Source: Adineta vaga (lineage: Eukaryota > Animalia > Rotifera). Taken from it: a stretch of 64,000 nucleotides of DNA. The number at the start of each line of letters is the position of its first letter. Positions within the stretch are counted from its first letter, which is position 1. The position numbers and the translations under genes were made by a program. This document shows, in pieces, positions 3,649 through 55,512 of this stretch. The stretch spans positions 10,230,001-10,294,000 of the forward strand of contig CP075492.1 in the NCBI GenBank assembly GCA_021613535.1. Direction: 5' to 3'. The notes under the pieces were generated by a model. That model was not told where the DNA came from and did no database searches. It worked only from the letters and a program-made list of their open reading frames with translations.

Positions 3649-6600
3649 ATGCATCGATATCGACATTTCGATGATGTAATTGATACGATGAATTCCAATA
3701 CCGCAGCTATTTTACCAGAAATTGATAATGATGAACCATTTCAAGTGCAATTTACTCCTCAACTCAATAATTATGCTTCGAATTTTCAAAAATTGAAATA
3801 TTTTTTTTCACAACGTACACGCCTTGAACGATTTCTTATTTATCTAATTTTTCTTTTACTTCTCGTTTTATTTATTATAACTCTGGTATCTCTCTATCAT
3901 TCAAATCGAAAATTTAAATCTGACGATGTATTATGCTTAACTCCAGCATGTATTCAAGTATCGTATACATTATCTTCGGGCATGAATCAATCCGCTGACC
4001 CATGCGAAGATTTCCATCAATTTGTATGCGGTAATTGGATTCATAAAAATATTATACCAAAGGGTCAATCTGGATGGTCAACATTGAAAGAAATAACACG
4101 AAAAAATACGATTATTTTAAAAAATATTCTCGAACAAACATCAATCTCATCATTGAATAATGCTGAACAAGATGCAATCAAATACTATCGATCATGTATG
4201 AATGTAACTGAAATCGAACGAATTAATTTAGAACCAGTAGAAAAATTTTTGGAAAAAAATCTCAATTTTACTCTTAAAGAATGGATTAATATCAATAAAA
4301 CACAAACTTGGCAACAATTATTCATTCGTTTCAGAAATAGTCTTACGACATCATATCACTTTTCATATGTTTTACCGATTGGAATTGATTCGGATGAGAA
4401 AAATTCAAGCTGGAATAATATTCATGTGAGTTATTCGAATACATGATAATTTTTTAGTCTGATTTTATTTTTTATCGAAGATCGGACAATCACAACTTGG
4501 TTTGAATAGTCGTGATTATTATATCAATTCCACAACGGATAGTCAATCAAATGCAAGAAATCAAAAAGTAAAGTGTTCCATAAATAATCTGTACAAATTA
4601 CATTAATCGATTTTATTTAGATAATGGAAAGTTATGAAAAAGTCGGTTCAGATGTTTTACAATTACTTGGATTTAATAAAGATGATTCAATCAAACGTAT
4701 GAAAAATATTATTCAATTCGAAAAAGAATTAGCAATGATCAATTGTAAGTTATTATTAAATGCAACTACTAAAATGAATGTCTAACAATACTGTGCTTTT
4801 CATATTCAGTAGACGTAATGAAGAATGAGAGATCTTTTTAGATTAATTTATATACCGTAAAATGATTCGTCTACAGATGCCTTTCCTAAAGATGCTGATC
4901 ATTTCTTGTTCTTATAATTTCATATAAGAATGCATTTGGGAAATATAAGAATAAAGAAGCTTACACAAAGGGTGTATTGATGAATAATGAATTGACATTC
5001 TCGCTAGTTATTCAATCGTTTCAGTACACTATTCAAATATTACTCTAGTTTCATGTTGAATAGATTAATTTTGATTACACACCGTAAATATCACATACGG
5101 AACTATATCGTTTCCATTTTACGACATAATCAATTTATTAGGATATTATATTCTTCAATTTATTTTACACATAATCAAAACTTTAATATATTGCTTCATA
5201 ATTGAAAATCTAGTAATAAAAAAAGATAATATAGAGTTCATATTTTTATTATTTATTTGTTATTCAATAGAGAAGAGATGATCAATATACGAAAAAAGTA
5301 TATCTAAAGTTTTATACTATTGGTGATCGGTTTATATTAGTTTATTCTACACATTTTCACAGTAGACTAAAGTTTTACTCCGAATCGATTTGATATAGAT
5401 TAATCATATATTTCAGAAAATAGATATGCACTTTTCAATCGATTCAATGTAAAATATTAGTACAAATATACGTTCCAATTTCTGCACATTCCGTAGTACG
5501 ATTTGGGAATGGTTTCCTTTGTTCTAATTCGAATTTTTTTGTTATATATTCAGTACCCATGGAAATCCTTCAAAAACCTAATGAAACATATTATTTAATG
5601 TCAATCAAACAACTTCAAGATCAGTATCAATCGATTGGTTGGGATATCACCTCCTATTTCAATAAAATGCTCAATCTAAACGTATCAAATCCAATCAAAC
5701 TCGATAATAACGATCAAGTTATTGTTTTATCACTTGATCTGATGACAAAAGTCTCTCAAATTCTTACCACATATCTATTAGAACCAGATAGAAGTCATAT
5801 TGTTATCGATTATATTCTATTCTCATTAATCACAGATTTCACTGAACATTTACCACCAATATTTGAGGAAGCTGTTCTACCATTAAAAAGAGAGCTGCTT
5901 GGAAAAGATTCGATACCGGAGCGTTGGGAATATTGTGTAAAGAAAACCGATGGTGCATTTGGTTTTGGATTGGGTAAGATTGAGAAAGAATAATATTTGA
6001 ATTTTAAAACATAATAGTCTATATTTTAGGCGTCTTATATGTCAATGCAGCGTTTGGCGAAACTGATCGAATGAAAGCAAATGAATTGATTAGAAATATT
6101 CGTGAAATTTTCAAAGATAATCTTAATAAACTTCAATGGATTGATGAACAATCAAGAAATGAAGCAACGAAAAAATTAGAGAAAATTTATCAAAAAGTTG
6201 GTTATCCTGATTTTATTAAAAATCAGACAAAACTAAATGAATGGTTAGTTTAAATTACAACTATGATGATAAAAATGATTGTTTAATTGAAGGTATGCTG
6301 GTTTTTCGATGAGTGAAAATGAATATTTTAACAATGAAATAAAAGTCATAAATCGAGAACGTCGACGAACATTACTACAATATCGACAAAAAGTTGATCG
6401 CTCTACGTAAGAGAAGAGATTCTATAGCCGAAGGAAAACAATTATTAATATATCAATTGTTTATTTAGATGGGGTATGACACCACGAACAGTAAATGCTT
6501 ATTATAATCCTTCTGCAAATGAAATCGTGTTTCCTGCGGGAATTTTACAACCACCACTTTTTCATAAAGATCTTCCAATTGCAATTAATTATGGAGCAAT

Positions 6601-42971: not shown

Positions 42972-45479
42972 TTAGAAAATGTCATTGTCTTTGAGTTGTT
43001 CTTTTAATGTTGCATCTTCATCACGATAAGCCTTTCCATTAACGAATTTATGTGTTGATGATTTTGATTTTCGACAAGGCCTTCAAAAAAACAAAAGAAA
43101 ATATATTTTTTGTTTTCTCTCTCTCGCGCTCTTTCGAGTTAGAAAATCAATCGTACCATGTTAGACCTATGCGTTCGACATCTTCACTTGTTTGTGGTAA
43201 TGGTCTGTTTGATGTTTCAGGACAAATCGTTGCAAATACCACAGCAAGAAGAGAGGTAGTACCAAAAAATACAATAGGAAAATGAACCCATACTCGAGCC
43301 TAAATAAATCAGTCAGTCAGATATGAGAGGAAAATTATGAATCTTATACCAGAAGATCGTTTGATAATGTTCCAATAATTGCACCAAAACGAGCAACCAT
43401 AGAACATATTCCCATACATGTATTTCGTCCTTGCGTCGGAAATAATTCATTTGCATAGATATAGATAATTGCATAAGAACCCGATGCCAAAAATTTTAAA
43501 ACCACATTAACAATAAACATAAGTGTGATTTGTGCTGAATTGGGAGACATTACGATAGTATATTATTCTCAAAAAAGAAATGACACTACTCTACCTTGAC
43601 TATTTGTTACCATCATCGTTTGAATAGGTACAACTAAATATGCAACAATGCCAAACAAGAATACAAATGTACAAAATGGTAGTTTTCGACCCCATCGATC
43701 CAATACGAGATGAACTACGCAATAAGCAACGATTTCAACAATTGCACCAGCAGCAAATGCAACGTATGGATTCGATAACCATGCTCCTGAAAATAAAAAT
43801 CTTCACTTTGCTTCTGATTCATTCTTTTTTACTCACCCGTATTCTGTGAAACGCCATAGAAAACAAGATTTTGGACAAACCTATTACGAATAGAAGATCA
43901 TAAGAATAAAGGTTAAGACGATTCTATTACCATTGAAATGACATATTAATGCCAATAATAATCATAACTTTCGATCGAAGTAAACTCCATAAACCATGTG
44001 CTACATGTGGACATGATAGCTTTCTCTAAAATGAATTCGAAGAACTGTGTTTTTAAGAGTGATAGTTTTTAAATTACCTTCTTTTCTGCAGCAACCAAGC
44101 GTTCATATTGATCTGCATCGAAAGGTTTTTTATTTTCAGAAGCAATTCGTCGAAGAATTCGCTCAGCATGTGCATAATGACCTTTGGAAAGAAGCCAACG
44201 TGGACTTTCCGGAAGTATCCTGCACAGAAAAGTGTCAATAATACATACGAATAGAGTTAGAGATTTAGTTATACTTACAAGTAAAAGAAAAGAAAAGGTA
44301 TTGATAATATAGCTAAAGCTATATTCAAAACACGCCATGTTCGAAGAATATAAGCAAATCCTAGAAGAATTAATTCGCCACCAGCAAAGAAATATTCAAT
44401 GACAATGCCGGTAAATAATCGTTGTTTTGGTCCAACTATTGAAAGAATATGAAAACTATGGAAAATCTTGAAATGAATATCAACTAACCGATTTCCGCAC
44501 CTAAAAGAAAACATAAATTAATTTGAATAAGAAGAAACAAACGAACGATAAAACGATAAAGTCAGATGGAAAATTACGATAAGTTCAAGCCACTCTAACC
44601 TTTGTCAAACAGATTACAGATTGCATAATATTTTAATATGCATGAAATGAATATCTTGACTACATATCATTTGATCTAACTTCATTTTTCTTCTCTCATT
44701 TGTATCAATGAAATGTACTTACCAATGACAAAACCTGTAAGAGCAATCCCACGAGTTGCACAAGCTAATAAAAAACGACCAAGTACGAAAAAAGCATAGC
44801 TTATTTCAAAACCAAGTCTTCTATTAGGTGCTAATGCACACATAAACGCAGCGAATGTCAGGACAATGAATGAAACGCCCATAATCGGTCGTCGACCAAA
44901 TCTAGATTAGAATAGAAATAAAAATATTGTCTTTTCTTGAAATATTTTCTCGCAGTTACTTATCAGATAGAACACCGAATACAAGTGAACCAACCATATA
45001 ACCAAAGAAGAAAACAATTTGAGCAAAACTTTTCAGTGTTGTTCGATTACAAACCATCATCCACTAGAATATGAAAACATGTTCTCCTTTTTATTTCATA
45101 CAAGATTATTTCTAAAACAATAAAGATTCACTTCTTCAACCAATGTTGATTGATAATATGTTCGATCGAAAACAAATTTTGTACAAGCTTGCATTGGTTC
45201 ATCACTCGAATCACTGGTATTTGTCCATCGAAAACATCGTTGACATTCAGAAATTGATAATTGCTTTTGATATTGACGACATTGAGATTCATTCGGAATA
45301 TAATTATGATGTGCAATATCTGTTGATGATTGGCAATGGAAAGAAGGTGTTGCTGCTGTAAACGACCAAGTATAAACCATTATTGGAGGAAACATATAAG
45401 TTAAACATATTAAGAAATATTTCAATTTTTGATATCGACCAAATGGATTTATACTTTCATAGAAATCATCAAATTGCAT
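42972..45479 (-). CDS. SLC22 organic cation/anion transporter (MFS), multi-exon
   Basis: MQFDD..FGRYQ, Cys-rich extracellular loop, STLVEEW.MVC, SDKFGRRP, PESPRWL, ELFPTQGRN, PETSNRPLP. Stop at 42972-42974. Confidence 0.93.
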
Positions 45480-45972
45480 TGTTTAAGTTATTCTATTAAG
45501 CGAGCAAGTTATGTTAAAAACTAACCACACACCTTGTCGATAGAGTTAGAAGAGTGTCATTTCTTCTTAACTCATATGTTTCTCCTTTCTTTCTCTTTCT
45601 TTTTCGTTCTTTACCATTTTTCTTCATTTTCTTTTTATTTTCGTATGTAGCACAAAACTAAGTCGAATTATATCATAAAAGTACAGAGATCATTTTTATT
45701 GTGATCAGATTGTTTATTACTAAGTTCACACAGAATATTTCAAAATAGACTTTTGTTTTTTTTTCGGTAAAGTGTGATGTCCTTTCTGTTTTACTGTATT
45801 TGCTCTTTGGAATAGATCTCCTTTTTTTCATTACATTTTATCGCTATTGATAACAACACATAAGTACTTCAAAACAAGAAAGCTTTCATTTCATCGTCAT
45901 CATCAAGAAAATAAACATGTTTAGATAATAGAAAAAGAAAAGAAAAGATGTAAATAAATTTTATTTTGTCTT

Positions 45973-47599
45973 TCAAACACCAGATGATTCATTGGGAACC
46001 GTAACAAGATGTTTACCATTTTGAATACATGTTTTGAATTGTTCAGCAATAGGATATTCTTTATATTCTCCATCAGCAGTGGGAATATTAACACTCATTT
46101 CAGAAGATTTTGATGTAATAAATTCTGTATCAAGTGATGTTGATGATAGATATACATGACAGCCATCAGTTTTTTCTATTTGAATAGTTGGTACACGTTC
46201 AATGACTTGTGCTTTCATACTTTTACAATTGACAAATTCAATCAATGAGACAACAGATGTAAATTGTACGCCAACTTTTGAACATTGATCAAGTACAATT
46301 GAATTCACTTTACCTTCGATAACGATGGTGCAATTCGTACATCGATACATATAGATACAATGTTTCATTTCCGTTTCAGTTATTCGTAGATCAGATTTGT
46401 TTACTTGATATTCAACAATCCATTTATTACCTTCAAGAGCAAGCTTCGGTGTTCCTGTAGTTGCTGATGCTGTCTATTGAATAAAAATACAAATATTTTT
46501 TCTAAAAGAAAGAAATAAAAAAAGTAGAATTACTGCCGATGTTGTAGGCTTTTTTGATCGTGATGGCACAGCAGGTTTGTCATTGGCAGAGGGTTGATGG
46601 TCTATACGAGAAGAAATTCAAAGAAATTCCATTTGAAATATGTACTTTAGTTACCAGCTTGTTGACGTATTTGTGGATTCTTATGTGTTTTAAGTTCATC
46701 AGGTACTCGTTTCAAACGAGCTGTTACTCCTTGACCTAATGAATTGATTGAACTCATCAAATCATTACGACTATTATCCGCTGAATTATTAACATTTGCA
46801 TCCAATGCCATTGGAGGCGGAGGCGGTGGTGGAGGTGGTGGACCGCCAGCAGAAGCAGCAACAGGTTTAACGGGCGATGCATTAGCAGTACCGAAATCAC
46901 GTTTACCTTGTGAAGCCCATGCTAAACCGGTAGTATGATATTTTCTAACATAACTATAAAGATCATTTAAAATTTTAACCCATAATTTAACCCATTCAGC
47001 ATGAGTTGGATCTTTTTCTTTGAATTCTTTCAAAACACGATTCGAATAAAATTGAGCAGCATCCGACATATCTTTGATATGTGGACCAGGTGTTGGTGAG
47101 ACAAGAATCCAACCAAATGCTGGAATACCTTCCGAAATAGCGGATAGATGATTGAACAAAGGTGATTTTCGATTTTTATTTGTAAACGCTAGAAAAGAAA
47201 ATCTCTTATTAAAGAAATACTTTCTGATGTCAATTTGATACCTGTAATTGCTTCGATTTCACTTGATTGTGGTTTGATGGCGTTTGCTAATTGTTGATCA
47301 GCTGGTTTTTTACTTTGTACAGCTTGTCGTAGAAATTGTTGTTGAGCATCGAAAAGACGTGAAACATGATCGGTCATTGTAGTTAAATCACCACCAATCT
47401 TTTGTGAAATAGTAACAAAAGGTTTGACAGAATCATTAATTAATGTTTCATAATCTTGTATTATAGGTAAACGATCAACATTGTTTTCTGATTCATCATC
47501 AACATTTGATTGGTTAGATGAAGAAGCTGACGTAAGTTGTCTAGTAGCAGATTCTAAACGATTTGCAAGAGCTTCTAAACGTTTGATATGATCATCCAT
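45973..47599 (-). CDS. CAP: Adenylyl cyclase-associated protein (CAP/Srv2)
   Basis: N-terminal RLE motifs, FNHLSAISEGIPAFGW helical domain, poly-Pro, WH2-like LKRV..KTHKNP, CARP beta-helix, C-terminal PIAEQF. Confidence 0.96.
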
Positions 47600-47944
47600 T
47601 TTTCTTTTGTAAAGAAAATGAAATAACTAAACTTCACACCAACTATTGTTCTTATTACCGTTCTTTTATTTCACTTTCTATCGGATAAGATAAGTCTATT
47701 TGAATTAAACGAGAACAAACATCAGTATTTTCATATTTCAGCTCGAGATGAAAAGAAATCTCGTCATACCAACCATATTTGGTAAAATAGAAATGAATTC
47801 AGATAAAACAAAGAATAAAAAAAAGTAATTTTATACCATGACATTGCATGCTTATCTCATGTTTTCTTTTCTTTTCTTTTTCTCTCGTAAAGAAAACTAT
47901 GTCGATATATTAATTTAAATGTAAAGCAAAAAAGAATAAATCAT

Positions 47945-50027
47945 TCAGTTTTTTAGCATTGATTGTTGTTTTAATATTCTTCGACAGGCATCTTTATAGA
48001 CTTCTTTGGAATAACGTTTCCATTCTTCTTTCGCATGATAAGATTTGTAAAACACGGAATCGGATGGAAATGGAATTTCTGTTCGACGAATATTTTGTTT
48101 GTATTGATCCGATGCAATTCGTACGAATGAAGATTTACGTAAAAGAAGACATTCACATTCATTACTTACTAATGTAAATGTTGGTTGATTTGGGAAAAGC
48201 ATATCAGTTAAACCCTATGAGAAATATATGAAAAGATTGATATAAGAATCAATTTGTACATACAAATGATTGACCTTCATTCAATGTTTTTATATGTAGA
48301 TATAACATTCGATCCGGTAGAATTAAATTCGATTTCTTATTTGTCTATAACAAGAATGTAGCTATTCATATGAATAAATAATCAGTTCTTGTCTCACCAT
48401 GGATTGACTACGTTTGGATAATTGACGTGTTAATAGTAATTTCGAAGAATTATTTAATGATAATTCATCATAATCGATTAATTGCATTCGATCACGTTTA
48501 TCTACTACGCCGGGAAATTGCTGAATATAAAGAAAAACGAAATTCGATATGAATATGAAATATTCATCTGACTTTTTCTAGATCGGTAGTACTATCCGAT
48601 CTTGTCAGTGAATCGGAAGACATCCTTCGATCAATTGTTGTGGAACGTCGTAAACGACTTAGACGTAAATCAATATCCAATGTTGTTTCTTGTAGAGATG
48701 ATGCTTCAACATCGCCACTAAGTTGAATTTCAGAAAATAATATTTTATTATCTGCTGTTTCTTGTTGATCTGCCGTATCGTCATCATCATTATCATCATC
48801 ATCATCATCTCCATCAATCACTAAATATTATACTTGATTGCTTTCTTTTATAAATAAAAAGATATTCATTCAAACTTTTCTCATTTTGAAATTGATCTAA
48901 ATGTTGTTTACTTGATTTTCGTACACGTCCATCTGGATCGAGACGTTTCCATACTTCAAATGAACCTTTTTTAACAACTAAAATATGTTTCATACGACGA
49001 CTATCACGTGCAATCACTTCCGACAGACTAAAATAAAATATTCAATTTAATGATCAATCTATCACACTCGTTTATACCCAAAATTGCAATGTTGTATAGC
49101 ATGTGGAAATTCATGAAAACGATCGATTGGAAAGCCACGTAGAAATGGTGCATTAGTTCTAGAAATTCATCAAAAAGAATATTTTCAAACAATATCAATT
49201 GAAAGATTTTTTTTTATATTACTTGAGAAATTTTATATCATCTTTACTACAATATCGATCGTTTGCCATGTAAATTGCTTTGAAATCCTATGAGTAGAAG
49301 AAAAAATACTTCTTTTCTTTTCTGAAATAAATTAATCACGCGAGCATATTTACATCTTTCCAAAGGACCAATAATTCTAATTGTGTGTTTGATTTCACTG
49401 TAAAAATGTGTCGATCATTTGTCATTAATCCTTTTTCCTTTTCAGCAAAAAGAAATCGAATGATTCATTAATCTTCATAACTGAAATACTTACTCCAAAT
49501 GTACATCCACGTTTAAGAATATCTAATGTTTCGATATGATCATCAGTTATTCTTTTGTATGTAATCAAAGCTGAACCGGATAAAATAATATAGAAACAAG
49601 CAGAACGATCACCTTGTTGAATAATCGTTCGCTGTTCAGCATAACTAAAATTTAATTTTTGTATAAGAACATATTTTTTAGAAAGAATACATACCATTCA
49701 TACCATGCTTCTTGTAAGATTTGATTTTGTAATTGTATTGATAAACGAGAAAATGGTTTTATATCAGATAAACATCGTCGAATCTAAATACATAAAGATT
49801 AGTTAAACAAAATCATTACACGATTGTCTTTATAAGAACTGTTTTTCTCTATTATACCTCATCAACATTGGTTAGATCTCGTTCACCAGTTGGTTGTTTG
49901 AAAAAATCTCGAACGCTTGGTAAAATATCAAACTAGAAAAAAATACATTTAAAGAAACAAATCAAAAACTGAGAGTTCATTTTCTTACTGATCTGATTTT
50001 GAAATTGGATTTATCGAACATGTTCAT
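47945..50027 (-). CDS. Cyclic-nucleotide-binding domain protein (CNBD2-like), multi-exon
   Basis: cNMP-binding cassette RTIIQQGDRSACFYIILSGS..LKRGCTFG, a second degenerate cNMP domain (IARDS..ILVVKKGS; LNEGQSFG), and C-terminal FPSD...EEWKRY. Start Met inferred at 50027. Confidence 0.8.
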
Positions 50028-50855
50028 ACAGAATTTAATGTTACAAAATTCTTATCAAATGCAACACAAGCGGTCTATTTCAAAAAAGAAATTTGATCTT
50101 TCCTCTCTCACTGTTGCTCAATTGGTATGATGCTTTTATTCCAAAAAACACACACTGCATCAATAGATAGGAAAGAAGAGAATGAAATTACTTCTTCGGA
50201 GGTAGTATTAAAAAAAAGTGAAGAAATCAATATTTGTTCAAGAAATAGTTCAACAACATTTGAGAAAAATATTTTTCTTTTTTTCCGGAGTAAAACAAAA
50301 TCGGTCTATGTTGTTTTCATATTTAAATAATTCAGATTGTCGATTCAATATGAACTATAGATAATCGAACACTCGATAGGAAAGAAAAGTTGATACAGTT
50401 GTCATAATCTCAGAGAAAATATCAAGATTAACAATGACCTTTGATTGAATAAAAAAAAAGGAAAACATGTCTCCGATTAAATTCTTTGATTTTCTCCAAT
50501 TACTAAAGAGTTCATTCTGACGTAAAAATGCTTTTTTTTGCTCTTATATATATATACAAGTATCCACTTGAACTTATATTTAAGAATAGTAAGTCATGCA
50601 TTGAAAATTAACTTTAATTTAATACACCATAGCAATAATCATCTCTATCGTTTTTATAGTTTTTATTCATACATATATATGTATATATAAATGTGTGTGC
50701 ATATATCATATCTTAATTAAAAACAAATGATTTTGTATTATAAAAAGGAAAAAAAATTTCACTATTTCAAACATAGTTGAGCTAACACACAGACACAAAA
50801 AGAAAAATGAGCACGTATACAATGTCGAAAGTAGATTTTGTACAATTATAATCTT

Positions 50856-51909
50856 TTACATACGGAAGAATGATATAGTAAGGAATGAACATAATAGAAT
50901 GAAACATGAAGTCATCAAATGATGACTATCATTAGTATAAAAATAGGGTGAACTAGGATTATTAGGTGCATTGTTATTATTATTATTCACATCTCGATTT
51001 TGCATCCATGCATCACCTGTATTGGAACTGTATTGATTATTTGCCCAGGCATTATTGTTATTAGTCGCAGCCATTTGTCCACTATATGTATTGCTGTTAG
51101 GATATGAATTAGCATTGTACCCGTATTGGTTATTATTTGTATTTGTTGCTGGATTATATACATTCTTATTATTTAAAACTTGATTTGCGTTTGGTTGATA
51201 ACCGACTTGTGCATTAGAGGATTGATATCCGGAAGAACCAGCTGAACCTATGAAAAGAAAAGATGTGATTGTAATAAGAAAAACAACATATGTTCCTATT
51301 ACCTGCTGTCATAAGATGAGCATTATTATCTACCATATTCGTATTTCGTAAGAGTGGATTTGTTCCTGTTTGTCCACTGGCGGCTCCATACAACTGTGAT
51401 TGCTGTGGTTGCTGTTGTTGTAATTGTTGTTGCTGTAATTGTTGCTGTTGCAATTGTTGTTGTTGTTGCTGTAATTGTTGTTGTTGTAACTGTTGCTGTT
51501 GTACATTGTTTATCCCCATTGCATTCATTGTATTCGAAGGGTTTTGTTGTACGATCGTATTGCCATACTGATCTTTGTTCACTTGATTATTTAAATTTGT
51601 TCCATATAAATTTGTATTCTGTGGATAATTGTATCCTGCAGGTGCATTTCCAGCAGAAATTTGATTTCCATATAAAGATCCAGATGATAGTTGTTGCTGT
51701 TGTTGTTGACGTCGACGGCGAATAACATTTCCATTCATACCTAAAATAATCAGACAGTCATTGATTATCTTGTCTCGAAAAAAAAACCATATGCTATTTT
51801 TCTGTGTCCAGACAGAAGAAATTGAATTAGTTAGATAAGATAGACTCTTACCAGTAATGAAGAATGTTTGCAGAAAAAGTGAGACGATGATTACATGAAT
51901 CCAATACAT
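50856..51909 (-). CDS. Secreted Q/N-rich prion-like protein with RRRR site and probable GPI-anchor signal (295 aa; exons 51852-51909, 51303-51740, 50856-51247)
   Basis: Signal peptide, GNVIRRRR|QQQQQQLSSGSLYG, (QQQQL)n tract and N/Y/G-rich region. The C-terminus is TNDSHHLMTSCFILLCSFLTISFFRM* (small residues followed by a hydrophobic tail). Two phase-1 GT-AG introns keep the frame. Confidence 0.85.
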
Positions 51910-52891
51910 TCTATTAATTTGGTTGATGAAATGTTTTTCTTGAGAAAATCTAAAGGTTATGATTGATTTTAGCTTTAAATGAACGCAGATGATGAGGTGA
52001 CACTGCTTACATACACAGTGAGAGGTCAGCGAGACGGTAGCCTAGACTTTTTTTTTCTGTCTCAGGTGACACTACTCTATGTTGAACGAAAATTTCTCTC
52101 TTCTACTCAGACAGGAGACATAGGTAGAATAACGGCGAGGTCTTTTTTTCATTCTCTTTCTTTTCTTTCTTTGTACATAGTTAGTAGATATATTCTTTCT
52201 CTCTTTCTTGTCCTCATTCTCTCATTTTAAATGGTCATACGTAAAGAACGAGCAATCGCAGCAATAAATATAATCATGTCGTCTCTATTTGTCTGTACAG
52301 TTACCGTCGTTATCGTTCTCCTTCTATTCGATTTACTTCTTTTTTTCTCTTTATATTCAATGGAATATTTTTTTCTTGCTTTGTCTCTCTATCCACCAAA
52401 GAGACTAGAATTCGATTGCATTGAATCACTACATTTTGAATCACGATGACCGTTGTATATAGGTGAGAAGGAGAGAAAGAAAGAAATCTTTCTCTTTCTC
52501 GTCTTATTCTCTTCTTGCTTGTGAGTTATGAGAAAATATATGCCTTGAAATTAGTCATCATAAAAAGAACGTAGTCTATCGAGACAAACCTTATTTTATG
52601 ATATTTGATAGCAAATAAAATTATTAATTTTATCAGTCGTTTTTGTTGGTATATCATACAAGGATGTTAATATTCAAACAGCTTGAATTTAATTTAGAAA
52701 AGACGAAAAGAAAAAGAACACGAGACAAAAAAAACGAAAGAACTTTTACAGTTTGATAAGCAAATAGATAGCAATTGTATATAGTATTATTTAAATGAAA
52801 TAAACTTTGGTCCATACAAATAAAAAGAGTCCGTGAATGTGAAGGTCGACGTATTGTATGCATGTGTGAAATGAAGATGTTGTTGAATATC

Positions 52892-53703
52892 TCACTTGCC
52901 TGTTGGGCCATTTGCTGGTGGCTTGTTAACGAGTGCAGATGGATTAGATCCAGAAGGATTGGCATCTGGTTTACTATTCAGAGCACCACCCGATCGCCCT
53001 TGAACATCACTACCACTTCGTGATTGTCGATACCACGGATTACCTATATTCAATAAATTACTATTTATGTTGCTTATATCATAATAAACGTTATTACCTT
53101 GGCCATATGAACCATATTGATTATATGAGCCTGTATTTCCATAACCATATAAATTAGATCCATATGCACCATATTGTCCAGTACCATACCCAGAGCTACC
53201 TAAGTTAGGATATTGATAATTGTAGTTTGATCCATACGGATTTTGTGTATTGTAACCGTATGCTACGAAAGAAAGTGAATGTTGTATTTCATTGAAAATC
53301 AAGATAAAATGATTCCAATCGCTTACAGTTAGAGCCGTACTGATTGTATGGATATCCTTGTCCATATTGACTGTACTGACCATATTGACCATATTGGCCA
53401 CCATATTGTCCTATACCTGAATATAGACCTGATCCATAATTATTTGTACCATAAGTATTGTAAGGATATGATCCACTATAGGTTGGATTATAGCTGCCTG
53501 CTCCAGTATATGTGCCCGAATAAGGGTACGAACTTTGACCATAATAACTTGATGATAATTGACGGCGTCTACGACGAACTCGACCATCAACAACTATTGA
53601 TAGAATCTCTTTTGTCTTAATTTATACTAATCAAAATGAAATCGTAAAACTTACAAGTCGAAGAGATAATCAAAAGAAGTACAATCAATTTAATCATTGC
53701 CAT
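52892..53703 (-). CDS. Secreted G/Y/S/Q/N-rich low-complexity protein with RRRRR site (228 aa; exons 53655-53703, 53327-53593, 52892-53262)
   Basis: Signal MAMIKLIVLLLIISSTFVDG, then RVRRRRR|QLSSSYYGQSSYPYSG...GQYGGQYGQYGQYSQYGQG... The middle exon is read in a frame not shown in the ORF track. Two phase-1 introns. Confidence 0.87.
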
Positions 53704-55512
53704 TGCGTTACTCGTAGAAATATATATATATATGAATGACGTGTGTCTGAATGCTTATGTGAGTAGAAATGATTGCAGTATGTGTACAGTTACGTTATAG
53801 TTTATACAAATAATATTGATGATTGGCTCGATTTTTCTCTTTTTCCCTCTCTCTCTCTCTCTCTCTCTCTTTTGCTTCCACGCTTCCGACACTTTGTATA
53901 TCAATCCCTACAAATTTTCTATCCGCTTTTTTTCTCCTTGCCCTCAGTATGTGAGCGCTTGTCTTAGTGCATGTTTGGCCATGCCCTTTTACATGTAATA
54001 ATTGTAACTCTGCACTCGCATGATTAATATCGATTGTAGAAATCAAATGGATTTTTTTCGCAAGTATAGTCATAAAAATGTAAAAAGCTACAACAATATA
54101 TTCATATAAAATAAAGAACTACGAACAAAGTAGTCCATATAGGATTTGCATTTGAGTCATGTGTATGATGTTATGAAATAATTGTTCTTGGTTGGAAGAA
54201 TATGTGTACGCAATTTGATTTTATCATGAGATCAATTTCGAGAAAAAGTTTGATGAGATTGATAAGAATTAATACCTTGATTTTTCGATTAAATAATGGT
54301 AAAAATCTTCTTACTATATGAGAAATATGTATTTGATTTCATTCGAGGTGAGATAGTATAGAAATTCATGACCTTTTTAATGACGGTTTGATTTTTATAA
54401 CATCGAAATATAAGATTTTTCTTCTATAAGTCAAAAGAGAAAATAAAAGTGTGTAAATGTCTTTTTATATGTGATAAGTATTTTTTAAACATTGATGTGT
54501 GTCATTTCTGTTAAGATACTCAGTTGATTTGATTGTCGGAAAAAACAACGAAGGGTCCGTTAATTATTGAAACTATATACGATTATATAATTTCTGAAAT
54601 AGAACTAATTTTCAGCAATCTGTCATGCATGAAATTGTGATTATCAACACAAATATACATTCGATCAGTAATATCGTTCTCTAATTGGAATATATTTTGT
54701 TATTTTTCAAATAATCTAATACGCCGATGATTATCTATCATCGATCAATCGGAAAATATCGTTCAAAAGGAGCTTATTATCAATCAAGTCATCTTTTGTG
54801 AAAACAACAACGAATTTTTAATGAAAAAAGTTTATTTTTTTAATTAACTTTCTTTTTAGAATATAACTATGTATATATGTAAATAGACACTCGTTCATTG
54901 AGATGAAGACAAGGCCATAAATGACTTTCCTAGTATTTCATCACCTGATCTTGATTTGTATCCTTTGTATCGATGGATCGTTGTGTTAATCAATCCATCT
55001 GACGAAGTGAAACAAAAAATGAACGTACACAGGCAGCACATGAAGAAATCACATAGGATAAAAAAAACAGAAACAGTATGAACAGAAATCTATTACAGAC
55101 AAACAAAAGAAAGAAAGAACGAAAAACTTGTCTTCGCTTTGTCAAAAACGAAAATGAAAGAAAGTTTCTTGTTTTCTTCTTTAGATAGAGGTAAAGGAGC
55201 AATTAGAGAATAGAAAAGAAAAACGAAAACAGAAAAGGAAGAATATCTGACTGTAATGCACGCAATAGAATAAAAACAGCTTCATGATATATCCGTTCAA
55301 AAATGCTGTTAACTTGTCGCATAAATGTATACACACAAAATGAAAAAAATTTGATATGATGATGACGAATTTGTAAGATGAACATTGAAATAACCTTCAT
55401 TTCAATGGGAAATAACTTCTTTCGTTTTCAAAATCATTCTTCTTGGTTTTCTTTAGTAATCTTCTATCCTCGATTTTCTTATCTTCTAAAAAATAAATGT
55501 CCATCTGTCTAA

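Follow-up and report, generated by a model that had tools for sequence, protein, structure and literature searches.

Two adjacent genes on the minus strand of the 64-kb window (the whole stretch of Adineta vaga DNA that was analyzed), here called A (51909-50856) and B (53703-52892), are supported as real, expressed genes for secretory-pathway proteins. Both had been placed at these coordinates by a sequence-only reading, and the letters quoted there for the two junction motifs match the sequence exactly. The explanation that we regard as reasonably probable is that A and B, once matured by a convertase, serve as building blocks for an extracellular matrix or secretion, in which A would be tethered to the cell and B soluble. 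Cleavage, the pyroglutamate, the GPI anchor, cross-linking, the tissue and any A-B contact are parts of this explanation that we infer from the sequences.

The 5′ untranslated region of gene A spans at least 51910-52053, the far end being the limit reached by a metatranscriptome contig from run X8, and is 93% identical to that of A. ricciae. Exon 1 (51852-51909) holds the start codon and the predicted signal peptide in 19 codons plus one base; exon 2 (51303-51740) encodes a propeptide, a furin-type site and a Q/N-rich chain with x-Y-G motifs and polyglutamine; and exon 3 (50856-51247) encodes an N-rich chain, the putative C-terminal signal and the stop codon. The intervening introns of 111 nt (51741-51851) and 55 nt (51248-51302) are both phase 1; RNA contigs from three runs, each of a different study (X1, X2 and X8), show both joints, which are absent from DNA run X14. 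A model in which intron 1 is retained in frame as coding sequence was rejected because the A. ricciae intron carries a stop codon. Within exon 2, a Q-rich (QQQQL)n tract of variable length (51394-51504), encoded by CAA/CAG repeats, contains 4 to ∼45 Gln residues across orthologues and shows in-frame 3-nt length variants among the contigs.

The layout of three exons and two phase-1 introns that had been proposed for both genes holds for A but not for B, which has four exons, a third phase-1 intron and a product of ∼210 amino acids. Exon 1 of B (53655-53703) comprises the start codon and the predicted signal peptide in 16 codons plus one base and is followed by a 61-nt, phase-1 GT..AG intron (53594-53654). 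This intron lies outside the cover of the A. vaga contigs, which span 53327-53564 of exon 2; the ohnologue, A. ricciae and family members C and D all have an intron at this position, and two intron-less, mRNA-type orthologue contigs (L020 and L021) join the signal-peptide exon to exon 2 as modeled. Exon 2 (53327-53593), read from its translation and the RNA contigs, encodes a short propeptide, the furin-type site and a Tyr/Gly/Ser-rich chain. Like both introns of A, the 64-nt, phase-1 intron 2 of B (53326-53263) was borne out by the RNA contigs, with the joint 53262>53327 present in a contig from X1, an allelic variant in X2 and no such joint in DNA run X14. Exon 3 (53098-53262) is Tyr/Gly-rich, the YG dipeptide occurring nine times against 3.4 expected. 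The RNA contigs of X1 and X2 additionally excise a 54-nt, phase-1 stretch (53097-53044) that had been read as coding; this in-frame intron 3 contains an in-frame TAA in the A. ricciae orthologue and is missing from the orthologous proteins P0003, P0004 and P0007. Exon 4 (52892-53043) carries the motif N-P-W-Y-R .. V-Q-G-R-S-G-G, which is invariant in three orthologues, and a Lys/Pro-bearing tail that precedes the stop codon.

Upstream of B, alignment of A. vaga, A. ricciae, R. socialis, the ohnologue and one mRNA contig revealed a core promoter (53801-53830) with a CCAAT box (53826-53822) and a TATAAA box (53806-53801). Identity to A. ricciae is 82% over the 400 nt immediately upstream and ∼50% beyond them. 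The 3′ untranslated region (52667-52891) extends to a poly(A) site, seen as a poly-T loose end at 52667 in X2, and is 85% identical to A. ricciae, a value above that of the coding exons. Length variants among the contigs measured 3, 3 and 9 nt in coding parts and 1, 2, 2, 5, 8 and 10 nt outside them; that the coding variants are all in-frame multiples is indicative of coding constraint. Spliced models were assembled only for residue counts and hydropathy, and single exons were used for searches and folds. An Rfam search of 50000-55000 returned a SNORD60-like match that was sub-threshold (E 0.5).

The two products share a leader composed of a predicted signal peptide, a propeptide of ∼6-10 residues and a furin-type R-x-(K/R/H)-R-R site followed by Gln. 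The basic cleavage-type motif is R-R-R-R then Q in A (51706-51720) and R-V-R-R-R-R-R then Q in B (53559-53582). All 13 family sequences, which come from at least five species, have Arg at P1, P2 and P4 and Gln after the basic stretch, with K, R or H at P3, in agreement with the furin-type site and following Gln described previously. When all six frames of the window were inspected, the basic-Q motif was confined to A and B and is therefore not a product of chance. Signal-peptide and GPI-signal calls rest on hydropathy and a rule of thumb. Hydropathy peaks at the N termini of both products, over residues 1-9 in B; the only confident element in the AlphaFold2 model of B is an N-terminal helix, and the hydrophobic core measures ∼10-13 residues in B and its relatives. 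Counting against the favored explanation, the four to seven Arg residues directly after the hydrophobic segment are atypical of secreted proteins and might upset the topology. Proalbumin and pro-parathyroid hormone likewise have a propeptide of ∼6 residues and a basic pair that is cut by a furin-type convertase in the late Golgi; their products are folded proteins or hormones, whereas those predicted for A and B are of low complexity and always Gln-first. The P_proprotein model (PF01483) scored above cut-off at 11 places in the genome, so that proprotein convertase domains are present.

A hydrophobic GPI-type tail on A and the absence of one on B, both noted in the sequence-only reading, were evident from hydropathy. 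The GPI-attachment-type signal of A (50859-50933) consists of N-D-S followed, after a short polar spacer, by a hydrophobic tail of ∼18 residues that ends the protein; hydropathy windows mark the tail from residue 278 to the end of the 295-residue chain, leaving only two residues beyond the stretch. An omega-like N-[D/S/H]-[S/G/A], the spacer and the hydrophobic tail could be aligned in five sequences from Adineta to Rotaria (A. vaga, A. ricciae, R. socialis, a metagenome contig and the ohnologue), and a rule-of-thumb check found small residues at omega and omega+2 of A. The genome also encodes the GPI-transamidase subunit Gpi16/PIG-T. From these sequence features, A is probably anchored by GPI on the cell surface.

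Composition counts confirmed that charge-poor, low-complexity sequence follows the basic site in both genes. After RR|Q, A contains 38.5% Q+N and 10 charged residues (5 D/E and 5 K/R) in 265. B is 19% Tyr and 21% Gly, and its ∼183 mature residues include a run of 138 without K, R, D or E and finish in a short, conserved, basic Lys-bearing tail; the one basic site is N-terminal. The mature chains have no disulfide-forming Cys, and in three species both B and exon 2 of A show YG enrichment. By the Michelitsch-Weissman criterion, which was adopted as the threshold, a Q/N-rich domain has at least 30 Q+N in an 80-residue window. The prion-like composition ascribed to both proteins thus stands for A, with 47 Q+N in its best window, but not for B, with 22 per 80. 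In AlphaFold2 models, mature B has a pLDDT of ∼30 throughout and no strands, and A exon 2 is disordered except for one polyglutamine helix (residues 73-107 of exon 2); neither a beta-solenoid nor any other fold is present in the two models.

N-x-S/T sequons are strongly depleted in these chains. In 22 family pieces, 3 were observed against 77 expected (73 by local shuffles), and the minimum among 2000 shuffles was 54, although relatedness among the pieces means that the shuffle figures should not be read as formal probabilities. The same 22 pieces contain the reverse motif 47 times, and the observed/expected ratio for sequons in the other open reading frames of the window is 1.3. Two of the three exceptions fall at the predicted omega site and the third in a propeptide. 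The near-absence of sequons argues for passage of the chains through the ER lumen and for selection that keeps them unglycosylated. Sequon depletion in this family is a new observation made here.

A profile of the leader identified six loci in the 100.8-Mb genome. In the five that were read, a phase-1 intron comes after a signal-peptide exon, and the sixth, which is the second gene of the ohnologous pair, agrees in sequence. Members C and D carry other mature domains, and a strict DNA pattern for the B-type leader retrieved B and its ohnologue only. Of the 18 matches that HMMER returned when the profile was run against 1.84 billion proteins, those assigned to the family are all unnamed bdelloid proteins; in the weak tail, the two matches that were read (P0021 and P0022) look compositional, and P0017 is an ostracod protein. 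As judged from these sequence searches, the family, which has six loci in this genome, is restricted to bdelloid rotifers. A Pfam search with seven exon pieces found nothing at or near cut-off, with no family at E 1 or better for any B piece, none at cut-off for A, and no match of the exon pieces of A and B to the GYR/YLP motif model (PF02756). The ESM Atlas held no usable match to A and only chance-level look-alikes of B (0.78-0.80), and word-index searches yielded few relatives because polyglutamine and YG words swamp the candidate list. Literature on rotifer adhesive, trophi, eggshell or prion-like proteins contained nothing found to concern the A/B family.

The leader, the pair, its B-then-A order and its intron phases are all kept in the ohnologous block on another chromosome (C6), in A. 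ricciae and in Rotaria socialis, which upholds the expectation of conserved linkage. The collinear block on both ohnologous chromosomes and in these two species comprises an upstream gene, B, A and a cNMP-binding gene; A-B adjacency inside this larger block is therefore not specific evidence of coupling, and the two proteins may act separately. Of six exon comparisons with A. ricciae (dS ∼0.8-1.1), five gave a dN/dS of 0.08-0.20, indicative of purifying selection; the values are 0.08 for B exon 2, which is 91% identical at the amino acid level, and 0.15 for A exon 2. That A and B are diverged paralogues is upheld by the leader but not by the mature domains, which could not be aligned (BLASTP E 0.46; hhalign, 11 leader columns with a probability of 14%).

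In the favored explanation, the cleavable signal peptide, encoded by its own exon, would bring each chain into the ER, and a Golgi proprotein convertase would cut the propeptide at R-x-(K/R/H)-R-R, leaving an N-terminal Gln that could cyclise to pyroglutamate. The resulting mature chains would be disordered, nearly uncharged and sequon-free, with recurring x-Y-G motifs. The C-terminal signal of A would be swapped for a GPI anchor, so that A is held on the outer face of the producing cell, and B would be released as a soluble subunit with a Lys-bearing tail. Together, A and B would build a bare, non-glycosylated extracellular material, for which an egg envelope, a cuticular or jaw lining and a gland secretion are candidates; A could form a cell-bound layer and B the bulk component. 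Tyr-based association and peroxidase-type cross-links would hold the material together. Animal haem peroxidases gave 21 exon-level matches on four chromosomes of the genome, which also encodes transglutaminase; peroxidase cross-linking of the A/B material is only a possibility. Tyrosinase (PF00264) had no match in the genome, making DOPA-type tanning unlikely, but control genomes were equally silent, so absence is unproven. A further proposal, which we think rather improbable, is that GPI-anchored, polyQ/N-bearing A recruits or nucleates Tyr/Gly-rich B as an extracellular counterpart of intracellular prion-like or FUS-like assemblies, the unglycosylated, pyroglutamate-capped chains being fixed into a solid by x-Y-G stickers, dityrosine, or isopeptide bonds between Gln of the A polyglutamine and Lys of the B tail.

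The bacterial curli proteins CsgA and CsgB are built of imperfect repeats, homologous between the two, which adopt a beta-solenoid fold, and the sequence-only reading had cast A as a surface-tethered nucleator and B as the secreted subunit of a CsgB/CsgA-like two-component functional amyloid or condensate, a reading that now appears highly doubtful. The resemblance to curli is that a cell-bound and a secreted protein are encoded side by side and are Q/N/G/S/Y-rich. In line with this, both A and B appear to be secreted, one anchored and one free, A is strongly enriched in Q/N and shares x-Y-G motifs with B, both chains would stay unglycosylated through sequon avoidance, as close packing would need, and the two genes have remained neighbors in two genera as well as in each of the ohnologous blocks. 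In contrast to the curli proteins, however, A and B would follow a eukaryotic secretory route with convertase processing, and their mature domains cannot be aligned and are predicted to be disordered; there is hence no common repeat to template, and the repeat homology on which CsgB/CsgA templating is based is removed. Variation of the polyglutamine among A orthologues, the modest Q/N content of B and the inclusion of the pair in a larger collinear block also weigh against it, and amyloid formation, nucleation and A-B contact are unsupported. The associated role in a desiccation sheath is disfavored because the obligately aquatic Rotaria magnacalcarata (PMC5916493) retains family members. It is also unlikely, although collinearity of the whole block between ohnologous chromosomes and its retention in A. 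ricciae and R. socialis would fit, that A and B are functionally unrelated lubricant, mucus-like coat or matrix proteins of different cells, left as neighbors by an old tandem duplication and block synteny. No promoter motif common to the two genes was seen, the CCAAT and TATA boxes being found in B and not in A, and a metatranscriptome run shows A and not B, but contigs are unable to show absence of expression; moreover, A and B have the same leader, sequon avoidance and x-Y-G motif, and both were retained in duplicate after genome duplication.

[quoted passage not shown] Like these peptides, B is a predicted secreted, Gly/Tyr-rich product that would be matured at a basic site, and in both cases the genes are clustered or duplicated and lineage-specific; the B precursor has a putative signal peptide and basic processing site, with Gln heading the Gly/Tyr-rich sequence that follows. 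This role is nonetheless quite improbable, since mature B is ∼3 times longer than the NLP/CNC peptides (PMC2453101), nearly neutral rather than cationic, and without an internal dibasic site in its 138-residue uncharged run, and so is not a multi-peptide precursor. Strong purifying selection on B exon 2 contrasts with the diversifying evolution reported for nlp/cnc genes, and B has no homology to them and resembles no named family in Pfam and profile searches. Extremely improbable is an arrangement in which the N-terminal hydrophobic segment and poly-Arg form an uncleaved reverse signal anchor of the microsomal P450 type, with cytosolic chains and A held at both ends. Charge across the segment is indeed more positive on its C-terminal side (∼+5 compared with +2 in B), and Q/N- and Y/G-rich domains are mostly cytosolic or nuclear. 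Yet B and its relatives have a short hydrophobic core, the basic residues keep an invariant R-x-(K/R/H)-R-R pattern before Q instead of forming a loose cluster, and the omega-site pattern is conserved; the ∼25-fold depletion of sequons, with the reverse motif common, would have no reason in a cytosolic protein.

Secreted low-complexity proteins form many animal materials, including egg envelopes, cuticles, glues and jaws, and Tyr-rich or Gly-rich examples include trematode eggshell precursors and arthropod glycine-rich cuticle proteins. When B was compared by language model, its look-alikes, at chance-level scores, were Gly-rich proteins of arthropods. PrP and Shadoo are GPI-anchored and have a disordered low-complexity region, and A resembles them in its predicted signal peptide, disordered low-complexity chain and C-terminal GPI signal. 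A differs from both in having no homology to them, no globular domain, a Q/N-rich composition with polyglutamine, and a convertase-type propeptide; the N-terminal region of PrP can phase-separate (10.1101/2023.02.15.528739). Nematode epicuticlins, whose Tyr motifs are taken as dityrosine cross-linking sites (PMC9612446), and similar matrix proteins are like A and B in having a signal peptide in its own exon, a repetitive disordered chain with regularly spaced Tyr, and repeat-length variation by slippage. There is, however, no sequence homology between them, A and B have neither a GYR/YLP Pfam match nor acidic repeats, and the furin-type propeptide with N-terminal Gln and the GPI-anchored partner gene are found here.

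As a simple signature, the nearly complete avoidance of sequons in strongly Asn/Ser/Thr-rich chains could help to search genomes for further low-complexity proteins that are prone to extracellular assembly. Should A and B co-assemble, they would be a rare animal pair of tethered and soluble low-complexity proteins acting extracellularly. For bdelloid biology, the family supplies candidate material genes that are defined, conserved and expressed, with experimental handles in the predicted pyroglutamate N terminus, the putative GPI anchor and the chemistry of possible Tyr and Gln/Lys cross-links.

Contigs of four runs, three of RNA type and one of DNA type, were mapped over positions 50700-53900, which contain gene A (51909-50856) and gene B (53703-52892) on the minus strand. 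Both introns of A (minus strand; intron 1, 51851-51741, 111 nt; intron 2, 51302-51248, 55 nt) were spliced out in three runs, each from a different study and one declared as a metatranscriptome, and two introns of B (minus strand; 53326-53263, 64 nt, and 53097-53044, 54 nt) were removed in RNA contigs. The contigs of the DNA run spanned the introns unspliced, with none removed, which confirms that both genes are transcribed and spliced, as the sequence-only reading had supposed. Intron 1 of B (53654-53594, minus strand) is modelled, the A. vaga contigs stopping at 53564, short of the intron; two intron-less mRNA-type contigs from other samples (L020 and L021) carry full-length B orthologues in which the signal-peptide exon runs directly into the following exon, precisely as in the B model. 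The introns of A and B are, without exception, GT..AG on the gene strand and in phase 1.

A layout of three exons with two phase-1 introns had been proposed for both genes. This stands for A, but in B the 54-nt intron had been misread as 18 codons; because it is spliced out, B has four exons and encodes ∼210 residues. This intron was the only part of B as first read without a low-complexity appearance, and its A. ricciae counterpart contains an in-frame stop. A poly-T loose end places the poly(A) site of B at ∼52667, and the 5′ UTR of A extends to 52053 or beyond. Intron 1 of A (51741-51851, minus strand; 111 nt) is in frame and stop-free, so that an unspliced transcript would remain open (ORF 51214-51909), but it is probably not coding sequence, since the A. 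ricciae intron carries a stop. Length differences between strains or alleles were 3, 3, and 9 nt in coding parts, compared with 1, 2, 2, 5, 8, and 10 nt outside them, as coding constraint predicts. The coding differences in A are in-frame repeat-length variants between runs in CAA/CAG tracts (one of minus 3 nt, one of plus 3 nt; positions 51379 and 51697); that in B (plus 9 nt, position 53372) lies in the Q-Y-G repeats and was seen in the DNA run as well.

The spliced models were searched exon by exon, the joined models serving for residue counting only. In both proteins, a hydrophobic N terminus is followed by a few residues, an Arg run, and Gln, and the junction motifs originally quoted match A and B exactly. 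Past this site, A comprises 265 residues (38.5% Q+N, 16 Tyr), of which 10 are charged (5 D/E and 5 K/R), with Cys confined to the C-terminal tail. B comprises 183 residues, including 35 Tyr, 38 Gly, and no Cys, with an uncharged run of 138 residues; both low-complexity chains are therefore charge-poor, as first described. The C terminus of A is formed by N-D-S, a short spacer, and a ∼18-residue hydrophobic stretch, and that of B by a short tail carrying its few Arg, Lys, and Asp, in agreement with the assignment of a hydrophobic tail to A only. AlphaFold2 predicted only the signal-peptide helix for a B orthologue (pLDDT ∼30 elsewhere) and, for A exon 2, a helix across the Q-rich tract as the sole feature. 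YG dipeptides were over-represented in B and in A exon 2 in three species.

Searching 1.84 billion representative proteins with a profile built from B orthologues gave 18 matches. The named family members were without exception unnamed products of Rotaria species; among the others, those read were either compositional matches or family sequences whose samples are unnamed, and one weak match was an ostracod protein. A Rotaria sordida match (P0019) has an A/B-type leader but a very different Q/N/W/D/K repeat. Its A. vaga counterpart, member C (G000:C5:5268145-5268898, plus strand; positions 1406-2159 of the extracted locus, L010), has a family-type signal-peptide exon, a phase-1 intron, an R-H-R-R site then Q, and Q/N/W/D/K repeats of ∼18 residues each.

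The genome (100.8 Mb, six contigs, ∼30% G+C, consistent with the 30.8% published for A. vaga, PMC5916493) was also searched with a leader-only profile, which gave six loci: B, the B ohnologue, C, the A ohnologue, A, and a marginal sixth on C3. Once read, the sixth proved to be a complete small Tyr/Gly-rich gene, member D (G000:C3:13516207-13516804, minus strand; L018:1110-1707), with four exons, introns all in phase 1, a leader ending R-K-R-R then Q, a Tyr/Gly-rich chain of ∼120 residues, and a C-terminal R-R-R-Q. Five of the six loci were read; in each, the signal peptide occupies a separate exon that a phase-1 intron follows, and additional phase-1 introns occur in B, D, and both A genes. 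An alignment of 13 leaders shows Arg without exception at P1, P2, and P4, and in all of them the basic run leads into Gln; no other reading frame of the 64-kb window has such a motif. The mature parts of A and B are not alignable, which limits support for their putative common descent to the leader and gene structure. The proposal of diverged paralogues is thus supported for those parts only.

The closest relatives of the window genes come from Adineta ricciae and Rotaria. The ohnologous block on C6 contains counterparts of both genes, one B-like and one A-like, in the order and orientation of the window, with the first introns and the second A intron at matching positions and phases, an A-type leader and hydrophobic C terminus in the A ohnologue, and collinear flanking genes. 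The order B, A, cNMP-binding gene, CAP, sugar transporter in A. ricciae matches the window, where the last three (cNMP-binding-domain gene, adenylyl-cyclase-associated protein, and sugar transporter) lie downstream of A and B at 45096-50021 (minus strand); R. socialis has B, A, cNMP-binding gene. The A-B linkage is therefore conserved. Against A. ricciae, dN/dS was 0.08-0.20 in five of six exon comparisons (dS near 1) and 0.75 in the tail exon of B. Conserved islands alternate with variable low-complexity stretches, and the polyQ tract ranges from 4 to about 45 residues across the aligned sequences.

Across 50700-54100, the non-coding parts of A and B match or exceed the coding exons in conservation with A. 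ricciae (L007). Identity is 67-82% in the four large exons, 93% in the A 5′ UTR, 85-86% in the 3′ UTRs, 84% in A intron 1, and 82% in the first 400 nt upstream of B, compared with 33-55% in nearby neutral DNA, which suggests that both genes are tightly controlled at the transcriptional or post-transcriptional level. Upstream of B (53801-53830, minus strand), a CCAAT box and a TATAAA box ∼20 nt apart lie within a ∼45-nt block that is near-identical in A. vaga, A. ricciae, R. socialis, and one mRNA-type contig and still recognisable in the ohnologue. A 16-codon ORF between B and A (52227-52277, minus strand), within a conserved non-coding block, is near-identical in A. ricciae (L007, about 5425-5475) and partly retained ahead of the ohnologous A gene (L006, about 3720-3760); it had no coverage among the RNA contigs. 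A weak SNORD60-like C/D-box match at 54301-54377 (minus strand; scoring 23 bits where the gathering threshold is 42, E 0.5) is probably due to chance.

Despite the very high Asn, Ser, and Thr content of the family chains, N-x-S/T sequons are nearly missing. In 22 family pieces, 3 were observed, compared with 77 expected from residue shuffles (minimum 54) and 73 from local shuffles, figures that are not formal probabilities because the sequences are related. The same pieces contain 47 copies of the mirror motif S/T-x-N and 120 N-S/T dipeptides, an asymmetry that is large despite this kinship. Two of the three exceptional sequons lie at the predicted omega site of A and one in a propeptide. No such depletion is seen in the other long ORFs of the window (observed/expected 1.3). 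The shortage of sequons is most simply explained by mature chains that meet the ER oligosaccharyltransferase and are under selection to remain bare. The one serious topological rival, in which the hydrophobic N terminus is a reverse signal anchor and the low-complexity domain is cytosolic, is argued against by this depletion, which speaks for exposure to the ER lumen. Bare, unglycosylated chains would also fit a role needing close chain-chain contact. The genome encodes convertase P domains, a GPI-transamidase subunit, haem peroxidases, and transglutaminases; a search for tyrosinase gave no match.

The sequence-only reading of A and B as an amyloid nucleator and its subunit is a low-probability alternative that found no positive support, and the analogy with CsgB/CsgA fails on the features tested, the mature parts being unalignable and predicted to be disordered. 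A desiccation-specific sheath, another role suggested there, is unlikely, given that family members persist in R. magnacalcarata, an obligately aquatic species (PMC5916493). A Gly/Tyr antimicrobial role like that of NLP/CNC (PMC2453101) is a minor alternative, against which size, neutrality, and strong purifying selection count. Most likely, A and B serve an extracellular material or secretion as disordered, unglycosylated building blocks matured by a convertase, A being kept on the cell by a predicted GPI anchor and B presumably released as a free protein. Proteins of this kind are already known: nematode epicuticlins, for instance, are disordered secreted proteins with Tyr motifs, have their signal peptide encoded by exon 1, and are taken to form dityrosine cross-links (PMC9612446). 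The A/B family itself is not among the known ones, and it is unusual in combining an invariant Gln after a short furin-type propeptide with avoidance of sequons and a putatively GPI-anchored polyQ/N member.
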